Of a stretch of 64,000 nt of DNA, positions 2,372 through 44,700 are shown piece by piece (position 1 is the first letter of the stretch; the number at the start of each line of letters is the position of its first letter). Below the pieces are notes generated by a model. It was not told the origin of the DNA. It worked only from the letters and a program-made list of their open reading frames with translations, and did no database searches. Source of the stretch: Haliotis rubra (taxonomy: Eukaryota); NCBI RefSeq assembly GCF_003918875.1, contig NW_025767309.1:558001-622000 (forward strand), written 5' to 3'. The translations under genes and the position numbers were made by a program.

Positions 2372-3238
2372 GTATGTCTGTTACATTGGCGAGCTGACAG
2401 TTGTATAGACATATGTAAATTCACAGTTTGGCCAAATTTATCGTCTGTTTCCAAAATTTATTTTAACTTGTTTAAATTCTTTTCTAAATATATACGCTGG
2501 ACGCGACTAACAGTAACAGTGCCCGCGGGAAGCATGCACTCATCAGATATGCATGATTACCCAATCACAAAATTCAATTGCGAAACCATGTTTATCTACT
2601 CCATTATGTAACAATCTTCATTCAGTCATTGCTTTCGTGTGTTATGACCAATGATGATATTTTGTGATGCCCAGTGAAAATACTACCTTAATTAGTCAAA
2701 ATAAAAATAAAAATCCTTCATTTTCTAATACCTAGAATCTATATCTTTAGAATGACATAGATATTTGTCTGCTCGTTATCAAATTCCAGTTAAACCTCTT
2801 TCCAATACTCCAATGTAAGCCCTGATTTTCTACTCAAAATGGAGCAAACAATCAAAATGATTGTTGAAATGTAGACACAATTTTTTGGGGTATATTAATG
2901 AATACATATTTGTTTTTAAATCCCCAAACCAAATTGTTACTTTAATGTACATAATTATTCAAAGGATAAATATATAAAAATCAGTGTTCATTTCTACGTT
3001 ATTATCATCTATACAGTGTTTCTTTGTTTATTGTTTAATGCCACACTCAGCAATATTCCAGCTATATGTCAGCAGTCTGTAAATAATAAAGTCTGAATCA
3101 GACAATCCAGTGATTAGCAGCATGAGCATCAATCCACACAACTGGAATATGATCACTGTACTATGCTATTATGCATCGCCTGATATAGTTTACACAAAAG
3201 CACACTCACACAGATTATAACTGGTGTTGCTATGTCAG

Positions 3239-3339
3239 TCAGAGGCAGACAGAAACAATGCCTGGAAGAATGCTGCCTCCATCTATGAGTTCACAGCTGA
3301 AGATATTGATGGAAGGGAAGTTTCTCTGGACAAATACAG
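3239..3339 (+). CDS. GPX4: GPX4 copy A exon 2
   Basis: SEADRNNAWKNAASIYEFTAEDIDGREVSLDKY(R), the typical PHGPx N-terminus. AG/GT flanks. Confidence 0.92.
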
Positions 3340-4093
3340 GTAGGGTTCTTGTATCGTTAAAGTCTTTGTAGATATTTGTTGGGGCAGTGGTGTAGCCTAA
3401 TGGTTAAGGCGTTCGCTCGTCATGCCGAAAGACCCGGGTTTGATTCCCCATATGGGCACAATGTCTGAAGCCCATTTCTGGTGTTTTTTTTATCAAGACT
3501 ATTTATATTAATATTTCTTCAATAAAGTGATTAGCTTGATTCATATTTCTCTCACCACCTGTATGTAAATTGACAAGAAAAAATTAGCATAAAACCAGAA
3601 CTCAAAAAGTAAAGAAATGATTTTATAAACATCAAACACAGATATTAAAAACACTCTATTTGCAGGCTCATCTGTAAAACAATAAAAAGATACAGCTCTG
3701 AAAAATCTGTAGTTTTCATGAGAGTTGTAAACATCATTTTATGCACAATCAGTACCATATTCAAATCTGTGTACAGACAGTGTAAATTGTGTTGTGTTTT
3801 CCTGTGTTCAAAGGCAAGTTGGGATCATGTTAAAGTGACAGTCACCAAGATTCAGAAATAAAAATTAGGATACACTATAGTCGAGTTGATACATATTGAC
3901 AACACCCCTAGTAATTTATCACCTTTATCAAAGTATTAAGGCTATAATAGCATTTTTCTAGTTTCATGCAGTGATATTAAGGCACCCTTTAGTAAAATCA
4001 TTTTATGCACAATCAGTTTCCATACACCATTCAAATACTGTGTACAGACAGTGCGAAGGTTTGATTGTGTTGTGTGTTCCTGTGTTCACCCAG

Positions 4094-4253
4094 GGGCAAG
4101 TTGGTGATCATTGTGAATGTGGCATCCAAGTGACAGTACACCAAGGAATACTACACTCAGCTACAACAACTCTAGTGATATTAAGGCACCCTGTCTCTGT
4201 TTAGCTTCTAGGATCCCCTGTGCGCCTTCCCTTTGTAACCAGTTTGGGGACAG
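4094..4253 (+). pseudogene. GPX4: GPX4 copy A exon 3 (Sec exon), disrupted in this sequence
   Basis: Reads [15 protein letters not shown](4131-4133)-QYTKEYYTQLQQL, then TAG at 4173 and sequence from the adjacent 61-bp repeat, then remnants of [13 protein letters not shown] and cag|gtc. 160 nt versus 148 nt in copy B. Confidence 0.8.
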
Positions 4254-4257
4254 GTCA

Positions 4258-4453
4258 AAGTGATATTAAGGCACCCTGTCTCTGTTTAGTTCTATAATCT
4301 ACCCCTGTGCTAGTTGTAAAAGTGATATTAAGGCACCCTGTCTCTGTTTAGTTCTATAATCTACCCCTGTGCTAGTTGAAAAGTGATATTAAGGCACCCT
4401 GTCTCTGTTTAGTTCTATAATCTACCCCTGTGCTAGTTGAAAAGTGATATTAA
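4258..4453 (+). repeat. ~61-bp tandem repeat, about 3 copies
   Basis: Unit aagtgatattaaggcaccctgtctctgtttagttctataatctacccctgtgctagttg repeated, ending at the TTAA of the adjacent transposon. Confidence 0.9.
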
Positions 4454-5546
4454 AGGTCACATGCAATCAAAAAATCAAACATAATTAAAACACAATTATC
4501 ACTTATTCACGACATATAATATACCTTGTTGATTATGAAAAAACATATAAACAAAATTATAAGCATACAATCGCAAATCAAAAGTGCAATATTTTGTACT
4601 TGGGTTTACTTCCCTCGAAACGAAGCACCCGGGAGACCGAACCCAGTCAGAGCGGGTGGGTGTGCACTCAAGTGTAACGGCTGGTTAATTTCCAGATGCC
4701 CTCACGGCTCATTGTGTGTGTATATATAGAGATGTTGGGTTTTGTAAATACATGCTCATTTTTTGTGTATAACATTTTGCAATCAACAGACATCATAACA
4801 TGTCATGTGTACAAGTATCACACCTGCCTGTCTGTGTAATTACATAATGTGACAGAGACCGAACTCGGGCCATAAATCAATGCGTTTTGTTTATGGTGTA
4901 TAGCCTGATAGGTGTTAAGTTCAAATTGCATGTGGTCAGTGATCGAAGTTGAGTATTGAATATTGTCATTAGCAGACAGGCAGGCAGACACAAAGGTGTC
5001 AGTAAAACAGACATTGAGTTTTGTCTGTGACAACGACATATCTATATCACAGTTAGAAATTCTGTCAACGCTAAATAATCAGATTGCTTTTAAGTATCGA
5101 ACTGAGAAAGTGACTCGGTAAGAAGAACGTGTGGTGAAATAGACAAATGAAATTATATAAACAGTTAAGTCGGTAATCTACTGTCATAACATATAAAAAG
5201 CTCGCGCCTGTGAAATATCAACAAAACATTAGAAAAATAGCTCTCACCAAAGCCTTCACCGAGTATTCACCGGACAACCCGCTTCCAAGCTGCGCGAACC
5301 TATTTCACTGCGCATGTGCTATGAGTGCAGCCCAGCGCATCGCAGCCTAGCTGTTGAAACCACTTTTCCCCCAAGCGCTGGGGGAAAATTAGTGAATTGT
5401 TTGAACTCCGATTTCGCGCGTTTTTTTTCATCGCGTTATTTTTCAACTTTATAAGTTGAATTTGCATTTTTTATGATTTGTTTCGGTAAGTCCGTACCGA
5501 AAGGTATCAGAATCTGCAAAGTTGTGTTTTACGTTGCATGTGACCT
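4454..5546. mobile_element. Non-autonomous Kolobok-type DNA transposon, copy 1
   Basis: TTAA target duplications at 4450-4453 and 5547-5550, TIR AGGTCACATGCAA/TTGCATGTGACCT. Close second copy at 30813-31883. Confidence 0.85.
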
Positions 5547-6231
5547 TTAAGTGTGAGTTTTGACTTAGGTTCGAGCTTTTACTCATATTTGAGAAAACGC
5601 AGGAAAATGCATTTCACAGAATGAACTGAAATCGGTATTAAACTCAAACTATAGTAACTACATATAACATATAACTACAATTTGAGTTTGGTGGATAGAT
5701 TCATTTAAGTAGTTTGGGCTTCTATATTTAAAAATTGCAGTTGAGTTAAAAATTCAGATGTTTCAAATTGTGAAACTCAGTTTGAGATTTGTGTAAAAAA
5801 CGTAAGTTTGTTTCAAAAATCGGAGCCTGGACAGTGAGTTTCAGTTACCAGCAGTGGACAATACACTGGAACATGAAGGGAACTTTATAAAACAATATAT
5901 TAAATGATGTACATGTACTATTGTGTCTGTAATGTTTGGTCCTGTTTGAACCTCTATTCAAAACAATCACACAATCTTATTACAATTATTACATCAGACC
6001 CAGTCAAGATCAGATGCCACTTCTATAGACAGTCGTATCGGGGACTGATGAGCTCAGAGAGAATAGTGACTGCCCTGTCTGAGGCTGCACTGGCTCTTGA
6101 ACCAATCAGATGTCAGCTTCCTAAACCTCTTTGGCTTTATTTCTGTATAACCTTAATTCAGAAATGTTGATCTTAGCTTCATTTCAACAGATGTGATGTC
6201 CTATGTAATTTTATGTTGTGTAATATTACAG

Positions 6232-6381
6232 GAGCCTTGGCCCGAACAATCGCATCAAGAGGTTTGTTTTGAAGGAGTTTGACGTTCAGTTCGACATGTA
6301 CAGCAAGACAGACGTGAATGGCAGAAAAGCCCATCCACTCTACAAATTCATCAAAGAACAGCAGAAAGGCATTTTAGGAAA
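6232..6381 (+). CDS. GPX4: GPX4 copy A exon 4 (+1 C at 6241-6243)
   Basis: Removing one C gives EPWPNNRIKRFVLKEFDVQFDMYSKTDVNGRKAHPLYKFIKEQQKGILG(N). 150 nt versus 149 nt in copy B. Confidence 0.88.
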
Positions 6382-7290
6382 GTTAGTATAACATTATTTA
6401 CAGTTTTAAAAACTTCATCTGCATATGTGGAATGATTTGACAAAACTGTTAGCCCTTGTTGCCAGCACCACAACACACAGAGAGCAGTGGGACAAATGAA
6501 GACCAGACTGATTCCCTTACAACATCTCTGATGATACCTTTCTAACTATGACAATAACTGTGTTGGAAGCAGTCTATAAGTTTCAACTAGAGATCATAAT
6601 CAACAAAATCTTCTAATTAGTCTGTAAAATGTGCTTGTACTGAAATTGCCCTTGTTGAAGGTGCAAACCCTATCTCTGTATCTTGAAAAACACTTAACTT
6701 ATCTCACCATCAAAGTTAAGAATTCTTGAATCAGTGCACAGCTGGTACAAGTAAATTAGACTGAGATTGATATTACACATATAATGCATGACCATGCATG
6801 CTCATAAGCTGAGGAAATCTATTTTATTGATTTATCACTCTTTGCCAAAAATGAAGACAAAAATATTTTTGAAATTTCATGTGTCCAGCTGACCACACTA
6901 CTGCATCTGGAATTCCACTTAATACGGCTCGGCATCAGGAGTACTGATACAGGGTTGGAAGCCCCTTGTTGTCCAATTTCTCCAAATGATTATATAATTG
7001 AACATACTACATTCCTTATCACAGTTGGGGCGGTAGGGTAGCATGGTGGTTAAAGCCTTCGCTTGAAGACCCGGGTTCGATTCCCACACGGGTACAATGT
7101 GTGAAGCCTGTTTCTGGTGTCCCCTGCTGATATTGCTGGAATATTGCTAAAAGCGACATAAAACTATACACACTCCCTTACCCCTATCATAGTTACCATG
7201 TTACCTGCTGTTCTGATCAGCAGGTCTCTTCCACATGTCACATGTCTTTCCAGGATCATGATGTTGTACAAACATATTATCTTCTTTCAG

Positions 7291-7375
7291 CATGCTGAAG
7301 TGGAACTTTACAAAATTTCTCATTGATCGCCAAGGAAAGCCTGTGAAGAGATTCGCGCCCCACATAGATCCCCAG
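7291..7375 (+). CDS. GPX4: GPX4 copy A exon 5
   Basis: [28 protein letters not shown], containing the KWNF catalytic Trp/Asn. Canonical splice sites. Confidence 0.95.
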
Positions 7376-7755
7376 GTAAGCTATGTTTCAGCAGCATGTG
7401 TGACAAGGTATCACAGATTTTACATATGGGGGACAAAAGTCCCAAAGTGAAGACTGATATATGGAAAGGTGATAAATACTACTAAAAAATCTCAAGGACC
7501 ACGGATTAACTAAAATGTGATATCAAAGAATTGGATGGTCCTTAAATTTTTTTTAACCCGTCCTCCACAAAAATTCACCCGTCTCCGGACGCTCAGTTTA
7601 TATGAAGCCTTATGAATTTTGTATAATGATTCACCATCCACCACTATTTTAATTTGTCAGTATATATTTCTGTCTCAAATATTAGTGAATCAGTCTGTTC
7701 TGTTGATATGTGTACACATGTTGCAATTTCTTAAGAATGGTTGTCTTTTCTTCAG

Positions 7756-7794
7756 GGAATGATGAAGGACCTTGTTCCATACTTCTATCGGTAG
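7756..7794 (+). CDS. GPX4: GPX4 copy A last coding exon
   Basis: ttcag|GMMKDLVPYFYR-TAG. Same length as the copy B last exon. Confidence 0.88.
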   Translation, partial: GMMKDLVPYFYR

Positions 7795-7870
7795 TCTCCA
7801 GTTTACTGCTTCCCTTGAGCTTATTGCAAGTCATCGTCCAGATCTTGTGTCTGTCTAGACCCAGCTTCAG

Positions 7871-7940
7871 CGTCAGTCAGAATAAATGAAGGTTGATCCC
7901 TAAACCTTGAAGGGGATTGACTGGAGATGGTTTGCTGGCG
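7871..7940 (+). promoter_or_regulatory. Type II SECIS element, GPX4-A 3'UTR
   Basis: ATGA at 7886-7889, helix GGTTGATCCC/GGGATTGACT, apical AAA at 7902-7904 with mini-stem CCT/AGG, 3' GA at 7924-7925, lower helix CGTCAG/CTGGCG. Confidence 0.92.
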
Positions 7941-10900
7941 TACAAACCACTCTGACTGGACACTGGTCAGTGCTGGACCTAGCTGGACATAACCATGGGT
8001 AGTGACTAGTTGTATGTGTAATAGTATCAGAGACACTTAACATTGTCTTAGCATAAATCAGATACTGCCTTGGCTTATTAGATGTATTACATCAAGACAA
8101 ACAATAAATGCAGTTTAATGATATTATAAATCACATTTTAAGTGCCCATTAATCGATAGTTCGGATACAGGAATTACTATGTGCTATTTGTCTTCTTTTG
8201 GACATGTTGTAGAACTTTTCTATTAAAGAAAGATGTTATGATGTTTATCAAATACAGACTGATCTCAGAAACTATGGCAATGTAACAATAAGTGTGATAA
8301 AAACAAATATACATGTATGTGTTATATGCAGTCGAAACTAAAGGGTTACTCAAGGGCAATAACTGTGATATTCTCCGCCAGCTGTGTAATATACCCATCT
8401 TATTCTTATTGTCTGCGATACTTTGCTGTGTTATTGGGAAGGTACGTAGATGTTTCTCAAGAAAATCTGTATTTCCTTGTGCATACATGGACACTCGAGC
8501 GTAATGTGCAGCCCCATTCTTGAGTATAAGTTTCAGTATGATGTCATACCATGCACAGTCAAAAGAATACTGCATTGCTTCAGATAAACGAACAAGAGAA
8601 AACAGACTTGATCATAGGCAGCAGTATTGGTAATATTCAGAAATATTCTTAACACTTTTCAGAATCAGATACTGTTGAAACAAATCTGGCATGCTTCAAT
8701 ACTAAGGTGTTGTCTTTGTTTTGGATTTTCAAAACTCATTGCATGTCCAATGCATACACCCTATCAACACAGCTATTTGTTGTGAAAAAAGTATGTGGTA
8801 CCCATTTTATGCATAGAGTAATAATTTAACAACTGATTAAGTTTATTCATTTTTATGGGAGAACGTGAGTGCTGCCCAGGGTCTGGTTGTTTATTGTTGT
8901 TTTTTACTTCAACAGAACGTCAAATGACACTGATATATGTATTGTTTGAGCGGAATCTAGAAGCATGTCTATTTTATACCACAATATTATATTTTATAAT
9001 TAACAATATATTCTTTTATACAGTATTAACAGTCTGATGTTAATTGTTGTTGATGCATTTGAAAGGAAACCTTGAGTCATGAATTGTTGATAGAGATCAG
9101 CAGACACAATACGTGGGCTGGATGCAGGACGGATCCATTACCTGCTTGGGATCTATATCCTGTTTGATGAAAGAAGGGTGGTTACAGTGCTCACATTTCT
9201 TTTGTCATCTGATTACTGACTAGTTTTTTTTATCACGTGCTGCATATTTTGGTGAACACACTGTGCTAGTGTTGACTTTGACAGTTTCCTTCTTGAAAGG
9301 TGGGGTAGCCTAATGGTTAAAGCGTTGGCCACCCCTGGGTACAATGTGTGAAGCCCATTTCTGGTGTCCCCTGCCGTGATGTTGCTGGAATATTGCTAAA
9401 AGCGGCGTAAAATCAAACTCAGTCAGTCAGTCAGTCCTTGAAAGGTCCATCCCTAAAAGTCATTGATAGTAGATATCTTTCTAAGGGATTCTTCTGAAGA
9501 TTTTGTTATCCTGTTATATTCATATTTAGGTTTGAGAAGTAATTTTGAAATTGTTATTATTTCAAATATCAAAATGAATATTTTTAGCTCACCTGACTAA
9601 TAGTCAAGTTCATCTTTCATCCTTTCAACAGAAACCAGTAGACCAATGAAGCTGAAATGTAACAGACATTTTCAACCACCTCAATTTGTTTCCAGATGTT
9701 TGAATCTTGTTTGGCACTCATATTGGAAAAGGTATTTATGACAATTTTTCTCATATTTGTTCAAAATGGATTAGTTTTGTGGCTCTAAATGTGTGTTTGT
9801 TTTTTCTGATGTGTTAATTTTTAAGTTTATATTTGACCATTGCACTTTGAAAATGGTCCAATATTGTTGCAAAATTCTTTTCCTCAGGAACTAATGGGCC
9901 AGTAAAACTCCATATGCTCATTCATTCACAATGATGACACCTGATCTTGTTCAGGAAATCTGTTTTTCAGTGTGGCGACCACAATGGCCATGTTGAAAAT
10001 TCTTGTATGGCCATTACACAGACATTTTTTTACAAAATATTATGAATTTGTTATGGGATGCAATAATTGCAGTAGTTGCTAAGGTGCTATGTGAGTGGAC
10101 ACAGGGTGACTGTTTGCCTGTTCCACCACACATAGTGGTTCTAACCTGACACAGATTATGTTTCAGACATTTATTTACATCACTGGTGCATGCTTAAAAA
10201 TTGTAAATTGGTTGTTATGTTTTAATGTTTATATACAGAGATGAAGTTATAGATATTTTGTCTCTGCATCCATATTTATTGTATCTAATATCTGTTTATA
10301 TACAAGGGTAAAGGTTTATTTTGTGTGATGTCACCAATATATTTGTACGGACATAATCATGGTGACAAAAGTAAATGTTATTCATGTGGTTCGTTTTTCA
10401 ATGTCAGATGACAACAATAAGAAATAAATTGAGTCTGGTGCTGCATAATTACTGGGGTAAATATTTCAACTTTATAAAGGCATCCTGTTCATCACTGGGC
10501 CAATGTAATTACTCACTGATTTACTGGACACTTAATAATGTAGTTATCTAACAAGATTGGTCCGGCAGAAAGGATATTTTGGCACAAACTCATTACAATC
10601 TTCTTGACATCTTTGAGACATTTAGAAGTTAAACAAATATAAATACATGATTCTTTGTCCTTTCATTCAAAACAAGATAAAAATGTGTTTGTGTGAAATA
10701 ATTAGTATGCTGCTGCCTTTTTGTGGTTTGTATTTATTTGCTGAGTTAGTTTTAGTGAAAGTTCTAGTCCTGTGATTTTTGTGAACTACAATTATTATAC
10801 TCAGATACATAGTCAGCGTCTTGTTGGTTGTTTAGTCACGTCTTTCAATATATTTATATTATCGGTATATATTTTTATGTATCTGAGCAACATTATATTC

Positions 10901-22231: not shown

Positions 22232-23496
22232 CCAGGGGTGGATGAACAGTTCTGAGTCTAACTATGATGGACTGCATTGATAGAGTTGGTTGCAAGTCAT
22301 CTTTCAAAATGATCCCCTCTGAAGTCCACACATTTCACCCAACAACACAAACATGCCTGGATCCCAATGGTGTAGATGTCCTCTTGGTAGTGGATACATC
22401 CTTCATGGCGGAACTGATGTAATATCACTTGCATAATTCTTAACAGGACATTCTTTGATCGAGTGAGGGAAGAGGAGGAAATCTGACGGTGCCCACATCT
22501 TGTGAATGTGGATGATGTCAATAAATTTAAACAACAGACGCATTGCAGACTGAGGTGCAAGTACAGTCTTTAATTAAGAGACGACACATCTTTATTTTTC
22601 CCCCACAATTGTGTCTGATATTCCTATTTAGCGGGCTTTTCAGACCAGCCATTTGTGGTCTGACCTTTCCCATGGTAGTCCTTCAGCAGGATTACTGTGG
22701 AATCTCAGAAAGGCAAAGCCGTATCACATTGCCAAACATGCTTTGTTGTCTTCTTCTTTGTTGGAGATGTTATATGACGGCACAGGTTTGACTGTTGTTT
22801 AACTGTTTTGTCGGTTGTTCTGGTGAACGACCCAATCCTGATCCATGGTTACAAAACAGTCCAACTGCAGCCTGGTCTGTTCAAAACAACATGAATTCTC
22901 ACCAGAAATGGAGAAATCTGGAGCGTTTCTGATCAGGAGTTTGAAGCATCTGAACTTTCTGTCATGCCTAGTTTATTACTGAGAATGTTGGAAACTCTCT
23001 CTTGAGAGATACCTACTTTATTGGCTATGCGGCGTGCACTGATTCCTGGATCATTCAAAATAATACCACATATTTTATCAACATTTTCCTTAGTGGTCAC
23101 AGTTGTGGGTCTTCCTGATCTTGGATCATCTTGGAGACTCTCTTTTCCCCTCCTGAACTCCGCTGCCCACCTTTTAACAGTGGCAAAGGAAGGAGCATCC
23201 TCTCCTAACGTTGACACCATGTCGGCATGGATGGCTGTTGGGGTGAGCCCTTTCATGTGGAGATACTTGATGACAGCTCGGTTGCCTATTTTGTCCATTT
23301 TCATCAACAGAGAATGCCTGGTGACTTTGGTGCCAGCAGAAACCGCTGCCTGGTTTTGTAGCTGGTTCCAGTGCAGTTTGTAAGCACTTGGTGAACAAGT
23401 TGTCTTATTGAGTAGGCGAAGGCTTTTATGTAATACATGCAAACCGTAGCTTCTGATTTCATTTATTTAGGCTCAGAACTTTTCAGCCACCCCACG
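22232..23496 (-). mobile_element. Mariner element, ~1.27 kb, catalytic domain decayed
   Basis: TA-flanked 29-bp TIRs at 22232-22260 and 23468-23496 (5 mismatches). Remnants TPDQKRSR, FVTMDQDW, ILLKDYHGKGQT and WVKCVDFRGDHFER are interrupted by stops and frameshifts. Confidence 0.9.
22933..23298 (-). CDS. Mariner paired-like (bipartite HTH) DNA-binding-domain-only protein, 121 aa (GVQW3-like), possibly domesticated
   Basis: Uninterrupted MDKIGNRAVIKYLHMKGLTPTAIHADM...PSFATVKRWAAEFRRGKESLQDDPRSGRP...ISARRIANKVGISQERVSNIL. Stops where the WVP linker should be. Confidence 0.6.
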   Translation of the reverse strand: MDKIGNRAVIKYLHMKGLTPTAIHADMVSTLGEDAPSFATVKRWAAEFRRGKESLQDDPRSGRPTTVTTKENVDKICGIILNDPGISARRIANKVGISQERVSNILSNKLGMTESSDASNS

Positions 23497-32662: not shown

Positions 32663-32760
32663 GCGACAGAGGATCCCAACGCCTGGAAGAAGGCCACCTC
32701 CATCTATGAGTTTACAGCCCAAGACATTGAAGGCAATGAAGTTTCCCTGGACAAATACAG
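32663..32760 (+). CDS. GPX4: GPX4 copy B exon 2
   Basis: ATEDPNAWKKATSIYEFTAQDIEGNEVSLDKY(R). ag/gt flanks. Confidence 0.93.
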
Positions 32761-33965
32761 GTAAATATATGACAATCAGATAACAGGAGATGCTGATACT
32801 GGTCCTGGCCATGATGTTTCTGAGCTATGCATTACCTCTGTGCAGGATGTGCTCTGTACAACATGTGCTCTGGACAAGATGTGCTCTGTGCAAGATGTGC
32901 TCTGTACAACATGTGCTCTGTACAACATGTGCTCTGTACAAGATGGGTGTTTATCAGTCTTCATAACACATGACCAATTTATCATATTGGAATGCAGGTA
33001 TTACAATAAACTCAAAGAAATGAAATTATATACTTGTTGTCTATATATGAATATGAACATGATCAATGAAAATAAGGAACTAAATATGATCTTGTACAAA
33101 TCATGCTATGTGTTAATTACTTAAATACTTGTTTACAGGGGTGGTTCTAGTTTCTGTTCAGGTCTCAGTGGATATCTTGCTTTTACTTCAGCCTCCAGTT
33201 TCTATATGTTAAGGGTCAGAATTTCATGCAATGTCGCTAACATCTAGTTAAGAACGCGTGATTACAATGTTTCTTGTCTGTGGGAACACACCCTGCTTTG
33301 TAAAAGCCTCTTTCATTGTATATGTGCATATCTTGTTTCACCTTTTGTATTGCAATAATGGGTATGAGGAATGTCAGCCACACAACCATAGATAAGCTGT
33401 TGCAATGGTGTCAACCTGCCACATGTTTGAAACAGATGGGTCATAACTATATGTATTTTTGAGGACTAATAATAAACTAATAACTAAACATTCCGTCATG
33501 CTGTATTGTGACAATATATGTTGAATATTGATTATAGTTTAATTCCTGTTAGGCCTTACAACATGTGTACAGGGTCTGTCAATTGTTGCACTGAATCCAA
33601 TATCACGTTTGCTGTTTCATACTGAACACATGTTAAATGGTCAAATATAGTATACCTATTCACACAGAAGAAAAATTTGTAAGTGACTTTAGTGTTATCT
33701 AAAAGCCAACAAACATCTGCTCTAATCCCACAAACTGTACATGTGCATATCATATTATAATCCCAGCCCAGGCAGAGATTTGGCTGTGACGTCATAGTGG
33801 AGAGGCGTCTGCCATTTCCCTTTGTTTACAGTGCAATCATCTACATGATGATGAAGTAATTTTTCCGTTATCCTTGTTGTGTAGCAGATCCTAGATGTGA
33901 TGTTGTATTGCATGGGGGGTGCAGTTCATCAAATAAGGTACAAAGTGTCATATCTTGAGACATCC

Positions 33966-34443
33966 CATCCTCGATAATCTCCAGGGTATACGTTCTGATA
34001 AATCTTTGCCCTGGATTCATCTATGACTCGGCCCGATAATTTTATTACCTCCCTTTGCTGGCTCCGCATTCTCACAGTAGCCAATCAGCTAAGCCGCCGT
34101 TACAACTAAGCTTGCCAGTGTCAACAAAGACAGCGGTCGCACTCAGATTTTTGGGGAAAACATACAGACAAATTGACAGGTCTGAAACCTTAATAAATAT
34201 ATGCAAGAACTCTTTCTACCTCCTTCAGAGTATCTATTCAACAATTTTGTTTCCAAGTTTTATCGGTTAGATAAAAGAAGCGAAAGTGAATTGTGATTGG
34301 TACGCTCAACTTCCCAGCGTAGACACCTGATTGGATAAAAAGCCAGCCAAGGGAGGTACTAAAATCATGGGGCCGAGCCGTAGATGCATCCAGGGTATAG
34401 TGGAGATTTATCGGAATGTATACCCTGGAGATTATCGAGGATG
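33966..34443. mobile_element. Mutator/MULE-like MITE
   Basis: Long TIR CATCCTCGATAATCTCCAGGGTATAC..., 9-bp TSD GAGACATCC at 33957-33965 and 34444-34452. Related decayed piece at ~11275-11590. Confidence 0.8.
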
Positions 34444-35299
34444 GAGACATCCAAGCTAAAGGACCAATTTACTGTGGAGGAAATTTTGCATACAGCAGTG
34501 TCTTGTATTCCTTGCATTTTGAGAGATCCAGACAAACTGGAGAAACGTGGTTATGAAAATGTGAGAGCAAAATTGAAGAAAGATGGCTTGTCAAATAAGT
34601 CTGAAAAGAAGTAACTTAACTAACATGATTTAATGATGGGAAAGCCTTTCTGATTATATTCACAACATATGCAGGGAACTTTTCTGCAATGTTTAGGAAA
34701 TCTATGGCAAACTAGTCTTGAGAATCTTGTGTGAATACGGTACGGTATATATACATCTGTGCATAAAATACGCACCACCCTGTATTTTTACCAATTAATT
34801 TTGTCTGAAATAAAAATTTGAAACTCTTTCCAAAAAATAACCTTTATAATTTGATAGAGCAAGCATTTAACATTTCAAAAACGAACATCATTGAAATTAC
34901 CATGTACTCTAATTAGGAAAATTGCCTATATTAGGTCTATTTCTGTCCTAAAACAAGTTACCTTATTTTGAAAAGTGAAAGTAATAATTGATTGTTGTGT
35001 GGCCTATAAATTCGTTATTTATTGTGAATGGATGAAAGTTTGTAAACTAAGATTGAGGAAAAGTTACAGTCAAACTAAAAAAAAGGAAAATTTTAAAGTG
35101 TAGTAAAAGTTGTTTTACAAACAAAACAAACAGGTTTTAGCTGTAAATATCAGTATCCGTCATCTTGGTATATAACAGAATTGTTATTTTTAGTCAAAAC
35201 TTAATTTAATTGTGTAGTTTGAGCAGGAGAGGAATAGTTATTTGGGGTAAAACTTCAGTCCCATCACATTTTCATCAACGTATTCTTTCATAAAGAATA

Positions 35300-35477
35300 G
35301 GGGCGGTGGGGTAGCCTAGTGGTCAAAGCGTTGGCTCGTCACGCCGAAGACCCGGGTTCGAATCCCCACATGGGTACAATGTGTGAAGCCCATTTCTGGT
35401 GTCCCCCGCCGTGATATTGCTGGAATATTGCTAAAAGCGGCATAAAACCAAACTCAGTCAGTCAGTCAGTCAGTCAG
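35300..35477 (+). mobile_element. tRNA-derived SINE family 1 (~150-180 bp), representative copy
   Basis: A box TAGCCTAGTGG, B box GGTTCGAATCC, tetranucleotide tail, TSD tcataaagaatag. At least 15 further copies, e.g. 3380, 7027, 9298, 11143, 15380, 17778, 18653, 19356, 39759, 45240, 50536 and 62313. Confidence 0.92.
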
Positions 35478-37095
35478 TCATAAAGAATAGAAAAGGTTAT
35501 AGTATTTGTAAAACTGTCAGTGGATAAAGCTTTTTTAACTACAGGTTGATCAAATTGATGGCTATACCCCAACTTTTCTGTAGCATCACATCTTATTTTC
35601 AAAATTGGGTGGTGCTTAATTAATGCATGGGTGTATATAAGCCCTAAAATCAATGAATTTTTCATTTAGATATTCATACATAAATGTTTAATACTCATGA
35701 CCATGTACATTACACACACCTTTTTTAAAATAAAGTCAGCCTATCTCCTATAAATAGAGAAGTGTTAGACATCGATAATGAAAATATATTGTAAAGGTTT
35801 TTGCCCCCTGAACTGCTTTTTATAAATAAATGACAAATTGCAAAATTGTCCGTTTAACAGGATAAACATGTGTGTGATGCACTGGATATGTATTTATTGT
35901 CAACCATTCATGGTCAGTCGGACCTGTGATGGACAGTTGGATCCGTGAAGATCTGGGTTAGAATTGGTCTTCAGTAACCTATGCTTGTCGTAAGAGGTGA
36001 CTTACACGATCTGATGGTCAGTCTTGCTAACTTGTCATCATATCCCAATTGTGTAGATTGATGCTCATGATGTTAATCACAGGAGTGTCTGGTCCAGACT
36101 CCATTATATATAGACCGCCACAATATAACTGGAACAGTGCTGAGTGCGGCGTTAAACAGCAAACAAACAGGAAGATTTTCCAAATGGGTTGTTGTGTGAC
36201 AAAAAGCAGTTATAGCGATAGATATTAATAATAAATTAGTGTGATGGGTATATTATAGTGTATATTATAAGTTTTATTTCAATTACTTGTGTTGAAATAC
36301 ATTATCTGTTTATTTATGTCTTCATTTGTGTTTGTTAGTGTGTGTTTCTCTATGTGACAGTCAATGATATAGTGCAGGATGTTTGGGTCAAGACTAATTA
36401 GTGTTTATTGTAAGCTAAATACTGGGCACTAAGGGACCATTATTAATGGCTACCGGGGGTGATGATGATTTTTAAGGGGGGTCACCCATTTTGTTCTGGG
36501 ATCTAGGGGGGTCATCAATTTTGTACACATGTTCTAAGGGGTCATCAATTTTGTACATATACATATTAAAAAGTCATGGTTATGAAATTAAGGGAGGGGG
36601 GAATTTGATTTTGTACATGACATGGGGGGGCACTTACATTGTACATAAATTTCAGGGGGGGTCATTCACATTGTACATGCTTCTCCATTAAGATTATCAT
36701 CACCCACCCCACTCCAATGTCTAGTTTAAAGTAGACACTCCTAGATCTACTATTTATTAGCATTTGTGTGTATGTTTATGTATAAATGTATAAACATGTG
36801 CTCATTTGTGAATTAATTTCTATGTAGGTATAGGTACACATACCCCACAGTCACGCTGAACACATAAAATATACCTGCGTGAAGAAGACTCGCCATTGTT
36901 TCATGATTTGAATGGGAGATAATTTTAGTTGGAAGTTAGTAAACAATAGCATAATATAAGATCGCCATCGTTTCATAAATTGGATAGGAGATAATTGTAG
37001 TTTGAAGTTAATAAAGAATAGCATTATATGAGATCTAGTCTAAATAAATAAAACATTCTACCAAAATTGCAAAGAAATGTTTGTTTATTTTCCAG

Positions 37096-37243
37096 GGGCA
37101 ACCTTGTCATCATCGTGAATGTGGCATGCAAGTGAGGATTTACTCAGAAGCACTACACTCAGCTACAAAAATTGTACGCCGATTATGCTGAGTCACAGGG
37201 CTTGAGGATCCTTGCTTTTCCATGCAACCAGTTTGGGGGGCAG
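37096..37243 (+). CDS. GPX4: GPX4 copy B exon 3, in-frame TGA (selenocysteine) at 37133-37135
   Basis: [49 protein letters not shown], containing both GPx signature motifs. Confidence 0.97.
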
Positions 37244-38388
37244 GTCAGTGTAGAGGCAATGTGCTATTCTTCATGGAATGGTGCCTGAAATAGGCTGAAT
37301 TGGAAGTCAAAGCAACATTTTTCAATTGTGTTTTTAGAGGTCAGAGTATGGACAAGACGATTTAATTGAAAAGTCGAAATGTATAAGTACGTTTGTTATG
37401 GCCTGAACATTATCATGTTACCTGCATCATGATACAGTGGCAAAGGTAGTTTTCATACTCTGGGTTGGTAACAGTCATAAGGAAACTGTATTTTGAATTA
37501 ACATACCAGTGAATTTCTCTTTGAATTTGTTTTTGAAAAATGTAAATTAGGGACCTTTCATAGTTTATGTCTAGGGGAGGTGATGATAATTTTAAGGGAG
37601 GGTCATCCATTTTGTTCTGGGGAGGTAGGGGGGTCATACATTTTGTACACATGTACTTGGGGGGTCAGCAATTTTGTGCATAAAAGTATTTTAAAAATAT
37701 GCTTAGAAATTAGGGGGGGGGGGCATTGATTTTCTACACGACATGCATGGGGGTTCACCTTCTTTGTACATAAACTTTAGGGGGGGATTCACATTGTACA
37801 TGCTTCTCAATAAAAATCATCATCACCCTCCCTGTAGCCATAAATCATGAATGTTAATTGTTTTGGGTTAAAGTGTGAAAATCTATCAGTTACTATTTAC
37901 TGAAATTTATATTTATAAGAAGGCCAAACCCTGATTGCTTGTGTACAACATACAAATCATTGCGTTTAGTGTGCTTCAAAACAGGGATGGTGGTGTCATT
38001 GTTAAGGCTGTGATACACTGGGTCTTGATGCAGTGGTTTTAGCAACATTATCTTAGACAAATGTCAAGAAAAATGTGATAATATGGAAACTTGTTTTTCA
38101 ATCTGCAATATAATTTATAATTACTAATTTACGTGCTGAAAGAGTTTGAAGAATGAATGATGTTGGGTGATAAATAAAATCTCACCTTTGTAGCCTATTC
38201 TCTATGTTAGGAACAAGAATGAGAAAACCTCTAGGATAGACATGCTTGATTAGAAAACCCCAACTCTTTGATGTGTCGTTTATCATTTTTGTAATACACA
38301 GGAATGTTTTTGCCATGTTTGTGCAGGGATGTTGGTCTGAGGGAGAACTGAGTGGTTGTTATATATCTTGGGGTTACATGTTTTGTAG

Positions 38389-38537
38389 GAACCGTGGCCG
38401 AACGACCAAATCCTAAGGTTTGTGAAGAAGGAGTTCCAGGTTGGGTTCGACATGTTCAGCAAGATTGAAGTCAATGGAAACAATGCACATCCACTTTTTA
38501 AGTTCCTTAAGGAGAAACAGAAAGGTTTATTTGGAAA
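38389..38537 (+). CDS. GPX4: GPX4 copy B exon 4
   Basis: EPWPNDQILRFVKKEFQVGFDMFSKIEVNGNNAHPLFKFLKEKQKGLFG(N). Lacks the oligomerisation loop, as in monomeric PHGPx. Confidence 0.95.
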
Positions 38538-39379
38538 GTAAGTGGTGTCATTATGAATGGTTGAAGACTTGAGTGTAGTTTTGATAAGGTTTATATTATT
38601 TTATGTAACCTTTAGTATATTTAGTGCAGCAAATTTTTATTGATTGAAGTAATTCTTTCTGTGGCACATCTGAACTGATGAAATAATGCAATTTGTGTTT
38701 ATCGTAGTATTGCAATGTTAGGCAAATTTTAATCTGAGAAATAATGCAATTTGTGTTTCTTGAAATATTGCAGTGTTTGGCACATCTTATTTGCAGTAGC
38801 GAGCGGAAGGTCGCGGGTTCGATCCCTGACCGCGTCATACCAATACCAATAGATGTTAAAATATGGTACTTGTTGGTCCCTGCCTGGTGCTCGGCATTAA
38901 TGGGTACAACAAGGACTGGTCGGCTCGGGAGTCAGTAATATGTGTCTGAGTGGGGTATTCATGCTTCACTGCGGCATGGTATCTCAGTGGGCTAGCACTA
39001 TAAAACCAGCTTCAGTCTCTGCTAGTACAAGCAGCCGCACATACACATACACACGCATGCACGTCGTCATATGAGCGAAATATTCTCAAGCATGACGTTA
39101 AACCCAATTTCACCTCACCTCACCTTAGTTGCAGAAGTTATGCAATTTATGATTATGGCAGTGATGTACGTTACGGTTAGTTGTATACATTTGTATGATG
39201 CAGATTTGACTGATTTCAGAATCTTATTGTCAGTATGGCCCTATTGACGGTTGCATTCATATTCTTGGATAACTTTTGTAGTGTGTATGTAAATTCCATT
39301 TATATTGTTTTCAGTTCTATCTGTACAGACTCAAAATGTAGCATGGAAATGCTTACTCCCATGTATTTCTTGTTTTCAG

Positions 39380-39464
39380 TTTTATCAAGTGGAACTTTAC
39401 AAAATTCATCATTGATCGTGAAGGAAAACCTGTCAAAAGATTTGCCCCAAATACAGAACCATTG
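39380..39464 (+). CDS. GPX4: GPX4 copy B exon 5
   Basis: [28 protein letters not shown] with canonical splice sites. Confidence 0.96.
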
Positions 39465-40544
39465 GTAGGTGTCATGTAGTCGGAAGGTGTCACAATGTTA
39501 GTTCATGTAGAGTTCATGTCAGTGAATTGTTAGACAGGAAACATTTATGACATTTGATAAATGGCCTACGCAGATTTCTAAATGGAATACTTAACTAAGC
39601 TGATAGTTATAAGTGAAGACGTTTATGGTAATACTAGTAATTCACGAGTGATAGAATGTCGTAATATGATTAGTGATGACAGGGACATGAATATATCAGT
39701 AAAAACACATTTATCTACCAAGTCATCATTTATTTGAGATATGTTGTGTTATGGAAGACTGACTGACTGACTGAGTTTAGTTTTACGCTGCTTTTAGCAA
39801 TATTCCAGCAATATCACGGCAGGGGACACCAGAAATGGGCTTAACACATTGTGCCCATGTGGGGAATCGAACCCGGGTCTTCGGCGTGACGAGCCAACGC
39901 TTTAACCACTAGGCTACCCCACCGCCCCTGTTATGGAAGAAGTGAATGTAATATATTCACATAATTAAACCACGTTATTCAATCAGCTAGTTTGATTGAC
40001 CATTTTAACAAATGTGAAGCTATTGATGAATGTCTGAAGGGTTTTTTACTCAAATTTTAGTAACTTTATAAAATATCATGTACTGTCTCCAAATAGAGTG
40101 AGTGAGTGAGTTTACTTTTACGCTGCACTTAGCAATATAGCAGCTATATGGCAGCAGCCTGTAAATAATTGAATCTGGACCAGTGATCAACAGCACGAGC
40201 ATCGATCTGCGCAATTGGGAACCGATGACATATGTCAACCAAGTCAGCGAGCCTGACCAACCCGATCCAGTTAGTTGCCTCTTACACCAAGCATGGGTTA
40301 CTGAAGGCACATTCTAACCCGGACCTTCATGGGTGACCAAATAGTTAGAAGTTATAGAACTATACCCAAAAATATACCATGGTTTAATTGTGAAGGAAAA
40401 GAACATTGTATGGAAAATAAGGAAAATATGGTAAGCAGTACAAAATATTATGGAAAGGAAATGTTTTTATTTAAATTTAGATGATTTCATTTTGAATTAT
40501 ACTTTCAAACCAAATCTTCTTCATATAAAGTTTTGCGATATGTA

Positions 40545-41120
40545 GTGAAATTAAGGGTAAGACTCTGCTTGTTACCCTTCAGTGCAGGTATAGTGCCGAT
40601 AAAAAACAAATATATACTCAGGATCAGATAAAGCTAGTCAGTTAAACTTGTATTTTCCATCCACAAGAGATGCTAATGAAACTAAGGGGAGACTACTGAT
40701 TATGAAAAAGCATACAGATGAAACGTTTTCCATATTGAGAATAAACAAATTTGAAATAAGTGATGTAATAAATTCTCTCCCTTTGAATAAAGCTTTGGGC
40801 CTGATTCCATGTGCCATAAAATTCTAAAACATACTGTAGCGTCTTTAATTATATGTACTTATATTATTATTATTAAATTTAATGATTTTATATATTTATT
40901 ATTATTATCTCATTGAGAACTTGTACTTACCCAAGCTAATGAAATATAACTGATGTAATCATTATAATGCCACTTTAAAAAAAACTGCTGACCCCATACT
41001 ATACATAGGACACAGATCAACATGTTTGATTAGCTTGCACAATTATTTTCATGAGAATTCATTGTTGTACAAAGACCTGTCAGGATTTGAAGCTGGTCAT
41101 TCCACCATTCACCAACTGAT
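40545..41120 (+). mobile_element. Heavily decayed LINE RT fragment
   Basis: Remnants LPLNKA.GPDSMCHKILK and GFEAGHSTIHQL with frameshifts. Confidence 0.55.
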
Positions 41121-41127
41121 GTAATCA

Positions 41128-41450
41128 TAATGATGATAATAATAACAATGGCCAAAGCACTTGTTTCCACACACTTGTGCATGCTCAAAGCGCTGACACA
41201 TTATTACCCCGGATAACCCAAGCTGTTAAGCGCTAGAAGGTTTTAGTCACCTGGTACCCATTTTCTGCTGGGTGAACAGAGGCAATATTGAACAAACTCA
41301 CTTGTCTAAGGTGAGACCACATGCATCACATATGCTTCGTTGTGGGGAAGGACTGAAGTCCGAGAAACTCACAGGAGTCAAGCTGCCAAACATGGTCACC
41401 CATCCAAGGACTCTGCACGCCCAATGTTGTGACTGAGCTCGATGCACAGG
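41128..41450 (-). mobile_element. 5S rRNA-derived SINE with CORE-like middle and L2-like tail
   Basis: Minus strand: caacattgggcg...cttggatgggtgacc (5S box C-like), cctctgttcacccagcagaaaatgggtacc (CORE-like), aagcgctttgag...(att)n tail. Confidence 0.6.
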
Positions 41451-41593
41451 ACCACAAACTTCAATGGTATTTGTGTCGTTCAGAGTGCATCCCAGCAGCT
41501 CTGGATCAGTTACCCTTGTTTGTTTAGATGTCTTCCTTTCAGCTTCAAACCAAAATTGTTTTCATTTATTATTTTCATGATGTATATTTTCAG

Positions 41594-41632
41594 TCTATGT
41601 TGAAAGACCTTGAACCCTACTTCAACAAGTAA
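41594..41632 (+). CDS. GPX4: GPX4 copy B last coding exon
   Basis: SMLKDLEPYFNK-TAA. The six exons sum to 522 nt (173 aa). Confidence 0.9.
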   Translation, partial: SMLKDLEPYFNK

Positions 41633-41722
41633 CCTCCCATGATTGTTGCCCTCCACGTCTACCATGTAATGCTGCAGCAAAGTCATCATCCAGATCTTGT
41701 GTCTGTCTAGACCCAGCTTCAG

Positions 41723-41792
41723 CGTCAGTCAGAATGAATGAAGGTTGATCCCTAAACCTTGAAGGGGATTGACTGGAGATGGTTTGCTGGCG
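41723..41792 (+). promoter_or_regulatory. Type II SECIS element, GPX4-B 3'UTR
   Basis: ATGA at 41738-41741 with the same AAA loop, helices and GA as copy A. Confidence 0.93.
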
Positions 41793-44700
41793 TACAAACC
41801 ACTCTGACTGGACACTGGTCAGTGCTGGACCTAGCTGGACATAACCATGGGTAGTGACTAGTTGTATGTGTAATAGTATATGATATTTATCTGCAAGTGT
41901 ATTTATATACCAGATGTGTATATTACTGTTTATGAGTGTGTATGAGGTGAATTTAAAGAAAGGTTGTTTCAAAATTTCAGGAACTATTGGCAATTGGGAG
42001 TTTGGTTGATTCTGTCCAGTTTGTTTGTTAGGATGCAGTATTTTATATTTTGCATTGAACGTGTTGAATCAGTTTTATGTTGTTCATGTGGTTTTAAATC
42101 TACTTGGTCTTTGTATAAAAACCATAAGTGCTGCCAGTTAAGTTTACTTCAAAAGATCACACTACTATATAATTTGAGAAATACTGAAAATCATTGGTTA
42201 AGTTCCAATTAAAATCATATCTTTTTATTTTGATGCAATTTTTAAATTTGAAAGAGCTGTGACAGATAAAATATATTTTTCAATTCATGAACTAAAACAT
42301 TAGATCTTCACTCGTTATTTGTACATTTTATTCAGATATTAATCAGTTCCAGTCCTTAGTGAAAGTACCGGTATATGTTCGAGATACTCAAGTTCATCTT
42401 TATCAAATAACATTTGTGTTTGTATTTATACTTAAAAAATGATTAATTCTTGGTGTTTTGCCTGCATATCTAATTACATTTAAGTTTGTTTATTTATGCA
42501 TATACTTAAGAGTTGTGTTCCCAGTTATGATTCCAGCATGATTATGTAAATGTTGTTTAAGTTTGTCAAGGCTTTTTAACCTTTTATGTTTTTTAGTGCT
42601 GTATGTTCTGTATTCATAACTCTTATACAGTCCCAATGTGCCAGTTTCTAACCTTATCTTCACAGCCTGGTGTAAGTCCAACATCTATGACTGGTCCAAG
42701 TCGGTCCAAAGTGAATCAGTAGTTGGTGCTATTATTCAGATGACATATGCTTTAACAGCCAGTGAAATATACTTTATTGTATTATCTTTCTATGAATAAA
42801 AGTTATAAATATCTAAATTTTAAACATTAAATATTTGTCATTTTGATGATTCTTGCCCATGTTCTCGATGCCTGTTCTTGAACTGAGAACTGGATTATCC
42901 TTAGGTCGGTGTCCTGTTCTGTTTGTCCAAACAGAAAAAAACAAGAGGGCTTTGATTTTACTTTAATACAATGTCATTCAAAGTGCCAAGTTTAGTTTGC
43001 CAGAAGTTATAAATTTAATGCTGAAGACCTTGAGGAATGCCAAGCCAATTCCTGGTGTTCCTTTCCATCTTGTTCCAGGATTGTTTCTTAGGCAGGTAAA
43101 CATTTTATTCACTTGACAGTTAAAAGATGATTTTTGAATTCAAGTTATCGTGGTTATGGAGAATATGGTTTATGTAAATTGAAGGTATCAAAATCACATG
43201 CTGTGTTATAAGAGGTATGCTATATTTACAAAAAATGGCAACCTCCCCACGCGACTTGCTGTTCCCCAAACCTCACTTGTTTTCTTTTTACTTGGGTTTA
43301 TTAAGCACTCTTTCTTTCAAATTCTTGGATCAACCTCTAGTAAAATATGTTACATTCCATTCCACAAGAAGGAAAATACTTCTAGGAAATAGCTGAAGAA
43401 CTTCAATGGTCACGATAGTGAATATTTGCAATGTCAATCAGCAACAAGCAATGTTTCATTCCAGCAATCGATATTAATTACAGCATTACCTCCTGTTCGA
43501 ATCACTAAGTGGAGTATAAGTGAAATATATCTCCTATCATTGTATGTAACATGTTGTTGTTGGTTGAGTCCAAGGTGGTTGTTGAACTGTGAAGTTGTGC
43601 CAGTTTTTCTTGATGGATCATTGCTCATATATCATGAAAAAGTGAAACGTGAAGAGTAGAACTGGAAAATGGCATTTTTTGTTTAAGATAGACTACTTCA
43701 AATTAATAATTTCTTTTGATATATTTTCTCAGATGAATATATCAAGTTGCAGAATTAATGGGTTTATATGGAAAGGTGTTTATTTTTGGATGTTTAATGT
43801 ATTGTTAATATCTCATTAGTTCATGTTTACTTTAGATTTGTTTCTTTTACTGATTTTCTCATATCTGTGACTTTGTAGTCCATTTTAGAGTTATTCTGTA
43901 AGTAAATGTTTGTTGAAACAAAACAAAACAACATTTTGAGAAAGCAAATAATCACTTGGTTATGTCAGGAGGATTGATTTAGATTGTTGTATTTGTTTAT
44001 ATCAATGAGACTGTGTAATCCGAATGCTCTTAAAACTATTTCCAAGACAGTGATTGGGAACCTCCGTGTCCATGTAATATCAGGAGATAATTTTACTTGC
44101 TGTTTCATAGCCTGTTGATTATTTGTTAATGATGAACACAATCCTGTTTTTGATACGGATTCATCTGTTTTACTTCTGGTACCAAGTAAGAAAAGTTTAG
44201 TGGATATATATATCCATATAGGAAAGCTTCTCTTGCATTTTATCTGTTAGAAGTATTACATGATATATCCATCCTTTGATCCAAGGTTTCCAAACTCTAG
44301 ATACGGTAAGAACTGATACAATTTGTTGTGTAAAACATTTTTAGGTAAAGGGAATAAGACACCTTATGACTTGTCATTTAGCAAAACAGTTTCGTAAAGA
44401 TTATTTCACCCCAAATATAATTATAAATGATATTATTATTTAAACAGGGTCTTGTCATTGTATATTTTGTATTGATACAAACCATTGTTTGTTTCCAGCA
44501 TGGTTTCTAAAAATAATTGCCATATCTGAAGCCATATAACTTATACAAAACAGGCCTCTAGTTGTGCCATAAGTCGGGTAGGAACCATCAGAGTTTCGGG
44601 AAACATTGGTGTCTCAGTATAAACATGTTATCATGTATTGATTTGCTGTAAATCTTTACAGAATTAAGCCTTGATCTCTTGTTTAACCCGTCTATATAAT

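Follow-up and report, generated by a model that had tools for sequence, protein, structure and literature searches.

We analyzed 64,000 nucleotides of DNA from the abalone Haliotis rubra (the window), which contains two GPx4-like genes, A and B. The 3' UTRs of these genes share a 200-nt block that is identical at 198 of 200 positions. A locus from this species, the blacklip abalone (GCA_003918875.1, contig QXJH01000606.1), matched the window with 100% identity over 11 kb. Genes A and B are old tandem duplicates, and all of their sequence outside of the block has diverged to saturation. We consider it likely that two processes together explain the identity of the block: strong purifying selection, and non-allelic gene conversion (the repair of one copy from the other), which would have made the two blocks nearly identical. 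The preliminary description of this sequence had proposed gene conversion as the cause. We found that at least one copying event after the duplication is indeed needed, but that constraint is the other half of the explanation.

The positions of the two genes and of the elements within them are given in Table 1. The genes have the same orientation and are 34 kb apart. Their products are 68% identical at the amino acid level, and over 139 codons we estimated dN = 0.20, dS = 1.07, and omega = 0.19 between them. Given this value of omega, gene A was functional over most of its evolution. The exons of gene B form a single open frame of 172 codons with one TGA, which lies directly after the codons for NVACK, and the NCBI annotation has a 173-residue product that is read through the UGA. 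Along with selenocysteine (Sec), the reading frame of gene B retains the Gln motif (FPCNQF) and the Trp/Asn motif (KWNF). Its best protein matches (E = 1e-50) all carry PF00255 (GSHPx). For the 126-amino-acid piece past the Sec codon, the best matches were 65–68% identical, in a database without abalone selenoproteins. In gene A, the Sec TGA lies directly after the codons for NVASK. In public transcript contigs, three gene calls have the Sec codon of a GPx read as W (NVASKWGFT); the gene caller's genetic code had TGA as a sense codon.

Table 1. Features of the two GPx4-like genes and of the 3' UTR block (positions within the window).
Feature	Position	Strand	Details
Gene A, GPx4-like	3243..7794	+	exons ~3243-3339, 4094-4253, 6232-6381, 7291-7375, 7756-7794; Sec TGA 4131-4133; AG/GT splice sites
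Lesion in Sec exon of gene A	4175..4209	+	35 nt like intron minisatellite unit in place of 28 nt of coding sequence
Block copy, 3' UTR of gene A	7828..8027	+	starts 33 nt past stop codon; 198/200 identical to gene B copy
SECIS-like element, gene A (AUGA, helix II, AAA, GA)	7876..7939	+	RF00031, 30.6 bits, E = 0.0012, full model length
Gene B, GPx4-like, intact from exon 2	32663..41632	+	exons 32663-32760, 37096-37243, 38389-38537, 39380-39464, 41594-41632; Sec TGA 37133-37135
Block copy, 3' UTR of gene B	41680..41879	+	starts 47 nt past stop codon; orthologous blocks in three other abalones
SECIS-like element, gene B	41728..41791	+	RF00031, 30.6 bits, E = 0.00027
Unpaired 20-nt tail of block	41860..41879 (gene B); 8008-8027 (gene A)	+	outside hairpin; every column invariant in 5/5 copies

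The two mismatches within the block are G at 7836 versus A at 41688 and A at 7884 versus G at 41736. Beyond both edges of the block, the ungapped identity of the two copies drops at once to the random level, and the flanks cannot be aligned (the best alignment has E = 0.16). As for the nearest coding sequence, the two genes differ at 22 of 85 positions in exon 5 and at 13 of 39 positions in the last exon. The preliminary description had reported the same counts for the block and for both exons, as well as the lack of any alignment of the flanking UTRs, and all of these are correct. There are no N bases in the window.

In another sample of H. rubra, position 7884 is G instead of A, so the true number of differences between the blocks may be just 1 in 200. 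This discrepancy may reflect allelic variation or a mistake in an assembly, or it may stem from a popped bubble (the removal of a variant during contig building). The A-specific base at 7884 makes an AATAAA (7881–7886), three bases ahead of the SECIS core. There is another AATAAA at 8103, past the block.

When we compared the window to itself with BLAST, the pair of blocks was the sole high-identity pair besides copies of transposons or SINEs, and there was no third copy of the block. Among the other repeats, SINE copies at 3430–3484 and 6999–7181 have depths of 10^5–10^6 in every DNA run. A 1.1-kb repeat, which also has a very high copy number in all of the DNA runs, is found in intron 3 of gene A (4450–5562) and upstream of exon 2 of gene B (30809–31898), and these two copies are 90% identical. 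Their positions are not collinear, and the copy near gene B adjoins reverse-transcriptase-like ORFs (30183–30806 and 31786–32247, minus strand); this repeat is a retroelement and is not part of the A/B duplication. A mariner-like ORF (22936–23304, minus strand) is absent from the gene records.

By using the neighboring NXNL2 gene as an anchor, we reached the 3' end of gene B in three other abalones: H. asinina (GCA_037392515.2, CM074532.1), H. cracherodii (GCA_022045235.1), and H. rufescens (GCA_023055435.1). With both copies from H. rubra, this gave five copies of the block to compare. Per 200 positions, the A and B copies from H. rubra have 2 differences; the B copy from H. rubra differs from the B copies of H. 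asinina, H. cracherodii, and H. rufescens at 6, 11, and 12 positions, respectively; and the copies from H. asinina and H. rufescens differ at 17 positions. In other words, the block of H. rubra gene B is 94–97% identical to those of the other three abalones. In the same comparisons, the sequences around the block are 61–90% identical (61–70% for the upstream intron, 80–90% for the first 200 nt downstream, and 67–81% for 200–400 nt downstream). Each of the 22-kb orthologous loci in the four genomes contains one copy of the block. These sequence comparisons indicate that all 200 nt of the block are under strong purifying selection within the genus, and because of this selection, homology between genes A and B survives only there.

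In each of the two H. rubra copies, the block lies within a long antisense ORF (for gene B, it has 123 codons and lies at 41622–41993 on the minus strand), which raises the question of whether a protein-coding gene on the other strand lies behind the conservation. We give this explanation next to no credence: stop codons interrupt the frame in all three of the other abalones, which rules out antisense coding as the cause. Also, the variable sites are spread over the three codon positions (5, 8, and 5 sites), and a word search of 5.8 billion proteins found no such protein.

Each copy of the block contains a SECIS-like element, and each lies in the 3' UTR of a gene whose Sec position is an in-frame UGA. 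The scores for the Rfam model RF00031 (SECIS_1) fall below its gathering score of 35, and the E values in Table 1 refer to the local stretch. In both copies, the cmscan alignment runs through the entire model, with the 5' AAUGA and the 3' GA at its conserved positions. Helix II has 11 invariant pairs (columns 64–74 with 85–95) and is followed by UAAAC. The entire block is predicted to fold as a single hairpin of about 180 nt (-71.2 kcal/mol, z = -3.55, 61 pairs), with the SECIS at the tip of the hairpin, followed by a second hairpin of 7 bp and then by the unpaired tail. Across the five copies, 98.7% of the 61 predicted pairs are kept. Six of the pairs have changes on one side only, via wobble, and three are broken in some copies. 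There are no double-sided compensatory changes among the five copies, so the long hairpin is plausible on the basis of its folding energy but is unproven by covariation. Overall, the block is probably the Sec-recoding module of an abalone GPx4 mRNA, comprising a SECIS-like stem-loop, the long predicted hairpin, and the tail, close behind the stop codon. As noted in the preliminary description, the conserved unit extends well beyond a 70-nt SECIS; it is about three times as long.

The block was not similar to three GPx4-like transcripts from other animals, though these transcripts have SECIS elements (one of them has its own SECIS with a score of 34.7 bits). Exact-pattern scans of metagenomes with two invariant words from the block gave no matches.

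If constraint were the full explanation, then every base of the block would be needed, and both copies would have remained unchanged since the duplication with no conversion at all. In the four species, no other part of the 3' UTR of gene B is nearly as conserved as the block, and the H. rubra B copy has barely changed since the split from H. asinina (its branch is very short, with about 0.5 substitutions), as this explanation would have it. But the B orthologues have accumulated 6–17 differences at dS values of 0.26 (H. rubra versus H. asinina), 0.40 (H. rubra versus H. rufescens), and 0.48 (H. asinina versus H. rufescens). If the rate for the block in the B lineages is scaled to the age of the A/B split, with dS of about 1 or more, then we would expect 18–32 differences instead of 2 (P = 3e-6 to 7e-12, Poisson; P would rise to about 0.06 if the B lineage of H. 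rubra evolved about five times more slowly than the others). Furthermore, other GPx4-like mRNAs have SECIS elements that are unlike the block, so this particular sequence is not a universal requirement. We therefore consider pure constraint to be very unlikely. With 2 of 200 differences between the paralogs at dS of about 1.07, as compared to 6–12 of 200 between H. rubra and the other B orthologues at dS of 0.26–0.40, the earlier argument that selection alone is an improbable cause is upheld. Because 2 differences are seen where 18–32 are expected, conversion or an equivalent copying event is needed, and constraint alone is insufficient.

The states of individual sites in the block bear on when this copying took place. 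At all nine of the sites that separate H. rubra and H. asinina from H. cracherodii and H. rufescens, the gene A copy has the state of the former pair. The only state that is private to H. rubra (C at 7994) is common to the A and B copies. At 7836, which is 9 nt from the edge of the block, the A copy has the state of H. cracherodii and H. rufescens, unlike the B copy of H. rubra. As judged from the distances in an unrooted tree, the A copy joins the tree of B copies within about one substitution of the node for H. rubra and H. asinina; this is also the point at which an outgroup would attach, as pure constraint would predict. Taking the rates and the site states together, it is well supported that the block was copied between A and B after the crown split of the line of H. 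rubra from that of H. cracherodii and H. rufescens. It is likely that the copying also postdates the split of H. rubra from H. asinina (2 versus 6 differences, which by itself is not significant).

Another potential explanation is that the near identity of the blocks is an artefact of assembly, polishing, or cross-mapping, or that the block belongs to a dispersed repeat or to a mobile element. The reference combines long and short reads in a hybrid assembly, and the difference at 7884 is absent from another sample of H. rubra, as mentioned above. However, independent contigs have the block at about 1.7–3 times the depth of its flanks in three organisms, rather than at the hundreds-fold depth that SINEs reach nearby. 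Words from the block were present in runs from six organisms, and contigs from four of these runs were aligned to 3150–8350 (bubble popping during contig building could hide differences between A and B). In the other sample of H. rubra, a contig with the block covers 7837–8027 at a depth of 11.6, as compared to about 7 for the flanks, and a flanking contig starts at 7998. The break in the block contig at 7836 is consistent with a real difference between A and B at that position. In organism C, whose flanks are about 3–7% diverged from those of H. rubra, one unitig corresponds to exactly 7828–8027 and has a depth of 16.3 versus 5–6 for the flanks (about threefold). Among the contigs from organism C with the context of gene A, one ends at 7857 and one starts at 7998. 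The edges of the block in organism C are thus the same as in H. rubra, and the unitig is not broken by any A/B difference. In organism D, a contig with the context of gene A ends at 7858, and the depth of the block is 112.9 versus 54 for the flanks (2.1-fold).

Given the roughly twofold depth of the block and the contigs with the context of gene A at its edges (upstream in organisms C and D, downstream in H. rubra and organism C), the identity is not an assembly artefact. A repeat or mobile element also does not fit with a single copy of the block in each of the four orthologous loci or with the lack of further copies in the window. Overall, we consider an artefact or a repeat to be extremely improbable, and the contigs from three organisms refuted the artefact reading that the preliminary description had raised.

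A run from organism A, which is probably RNA, yielded a 3400-nt contig in which the block has B-type letters and is flanked by sequence that could not be aligned to gene A. This contig includes about 2.6 kb of 3' UTR behind the gene B block (41880–44460 in the window). No contigs from this run lie on exons 4–6 or the UTR flanks of gene A, but contigs prove presence, not absence.

The contigs also give a hint about whether conversion happened more than once. In organism C, the share of the block's words that were found is 0.67–0.78, and there are two other letters relative to the A copy. Indirectly, this suggests a private substitution within a unitig that represents two copies, which would mean that conversion took place after organism C split from H. 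rubra. In organism D, the share of block words is 0.56, which is the value that the block from gene B of H. asinina would give, but we draw no conclusion from this match. We had considered that both paralogs of organism D might share the base at 7834 that is specific to H. asinina, but we dropped this idea because the end points disagree (7858 versus an aligned start of 7834).

Instead of conversion, a single recent transplant might have occurred. In this scenario, the module of gene B would have been placed into the UTR of gene A just once, before H. rubra and its relatives diverged, by non-homologous or microhomology-mediated copying (either templated repair or a patch made from gene B mRNA), and constraint or the short time since then would have kept the two alike. 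This would account for the sharp edges and for flanks without any homology. The identical edges in organisms C and D are as expected from one old event that became fixed, and the time of the A/B split of the block is compatible with the node for H. rubra and H. asinina. But gene A was under purifying selection during most of its evolution (omega = 0.19) and kept its Sec codon, so a SECIS would always have been needed at about this location, and there is no fossil SECIS nearby in gene A. The putative private substitution in the two-copy unitig of organism C, albeit indirect evidence, would also need a later conversion. On balance, we view a single transplant as unlikely.

We therefore return to gene conversion, which would have occurred at least once after the line of H. 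rubra split from that of H. cracherodii and H. rufescens, as the rates indicate, and which was probably repeated. In this mechanism, selection would slow divergence inside the module alone and so maintain an island of homology in which recombination can start and end, and each round of conversion would renew the identity of the island. The sharp edges of the block are best explained in this way. Recurrence across species is only hinted at by the data.

The later exons of gene A are open and conserved (omega = 0.10), but in this assembly, the Sec exon is disrupted. After the codon at 4170–4172, there are in-frame stops at 4173, 4176, 4182, 4209, and 4236, and CNQF is read in a different frame from the Sec codon. 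The Sec exon also has a deletion of one base in a run of G and an insertion of one base in a run of C, 25 nt apart, which compensate for each other. Behind the Sec exon is a minisatellite with units of about 62–85 nt (4174–4453), and one 30-nt piece of a unit lies inside the exon in place of coding sequence. A minor conversion or slippage event seems to have disabled gene A in this way. The lesion may be confined to H. rubra or to the present assembly; a contig from organism C aligned to the Sec exon of gene A up to 4174 and was then unmatched for 198 nt. Also, dS between A and B is uneven, with 0.60 for the N-terminal half and 1.98 for the C-terminal half (3242–4174 and 6259–7791 of gene A, respectively), which may be due to chance or may be a trace of an older conversion over exons 2–3.

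The preliminary description suggested that conversion keeps the UGA readthrough of the two selenoproteins matched or that it rescues a decayed SECIS. We found no support for matched readthrough, given the five in-frame stops in the Sec exon of gene A in this assembly and the probable transcriptome, where the block was found only in the context of gene B. As for the rescue of a decayed SECIS, we found no positive evidence for it: a search of the 3' region of gene A with RF00031 did not identify a second, fossil SECIS. The conversion can be explained without any functional purpose of this kind, and such a purpose is not supported for H. rubra.

A broader idea is that the long hairpin with the SECIS at its tip, the small second hairpin, and the invariant tail together form an autonomous cassette for Sec recoding, which would undergo concerted evolution within each species of Haliotis, in both of the GPx4 paralogs. 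Breaks that initiate conversion would be promoted by the palindromic DNA of the cassette, and selection would favor the same standing for both mRNAs in the selenium hierarchy. We regard this idea as doubtful.

SECIS elements are usually treated as structures of about 60–80 nt whose helices drift freely. A 200-nt SECIS unit that is nearly frozen across a genus and that has been homogenized between paralogs with saturated coding sequences is a natural experiment on which of the surrounding sequence matters. More generally, a small RNA element under selection can act as an island of homology, which would allow gene conversion to persist long past a duplication. There is also a warning for annotation: a perfect SECIS behind a gene is no proof of function, as gene A is broken in this assembly.

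Interlocus gene conversion, or the concerted evolution of tandem paralogs, is known from classic cases such as the globin and heat-shock gene pairs. In the literature that we searched, we found no report of the conversion of a SECIS. As in the globin and heat-shock pairs, the abalone paralogs are in tandem and in the same orientation, and a short tract is more similar than its surroundings and is younger than the duplication. In contrast to those cases, the abalone tract lies wholly within the 3' UTR and coincides with a cis-acting recoding RNA module, and the coding exons are saturated. The block also resembles ultraconserved or strongly constrained 3' UTR elements, in that it is far more similar across species than the neighboring UTR and introns are. 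It differs from them in that constraint alone underpredicts the identity of the paralogs by an order of magnitude. Finally, the block shares with the SECIS elements of RF00031 the AUGA...GA quartet, the 11-pair helix II, the apical AAA, and a location in the 3' UTR of a UGA-containing GPx gene, but it scores just 30.6 bits, below the threshold for that family, and its conservation extends over about three times the length of a SECIS, with an extra 7-bp hairpin and an invariant 20-nt tail.
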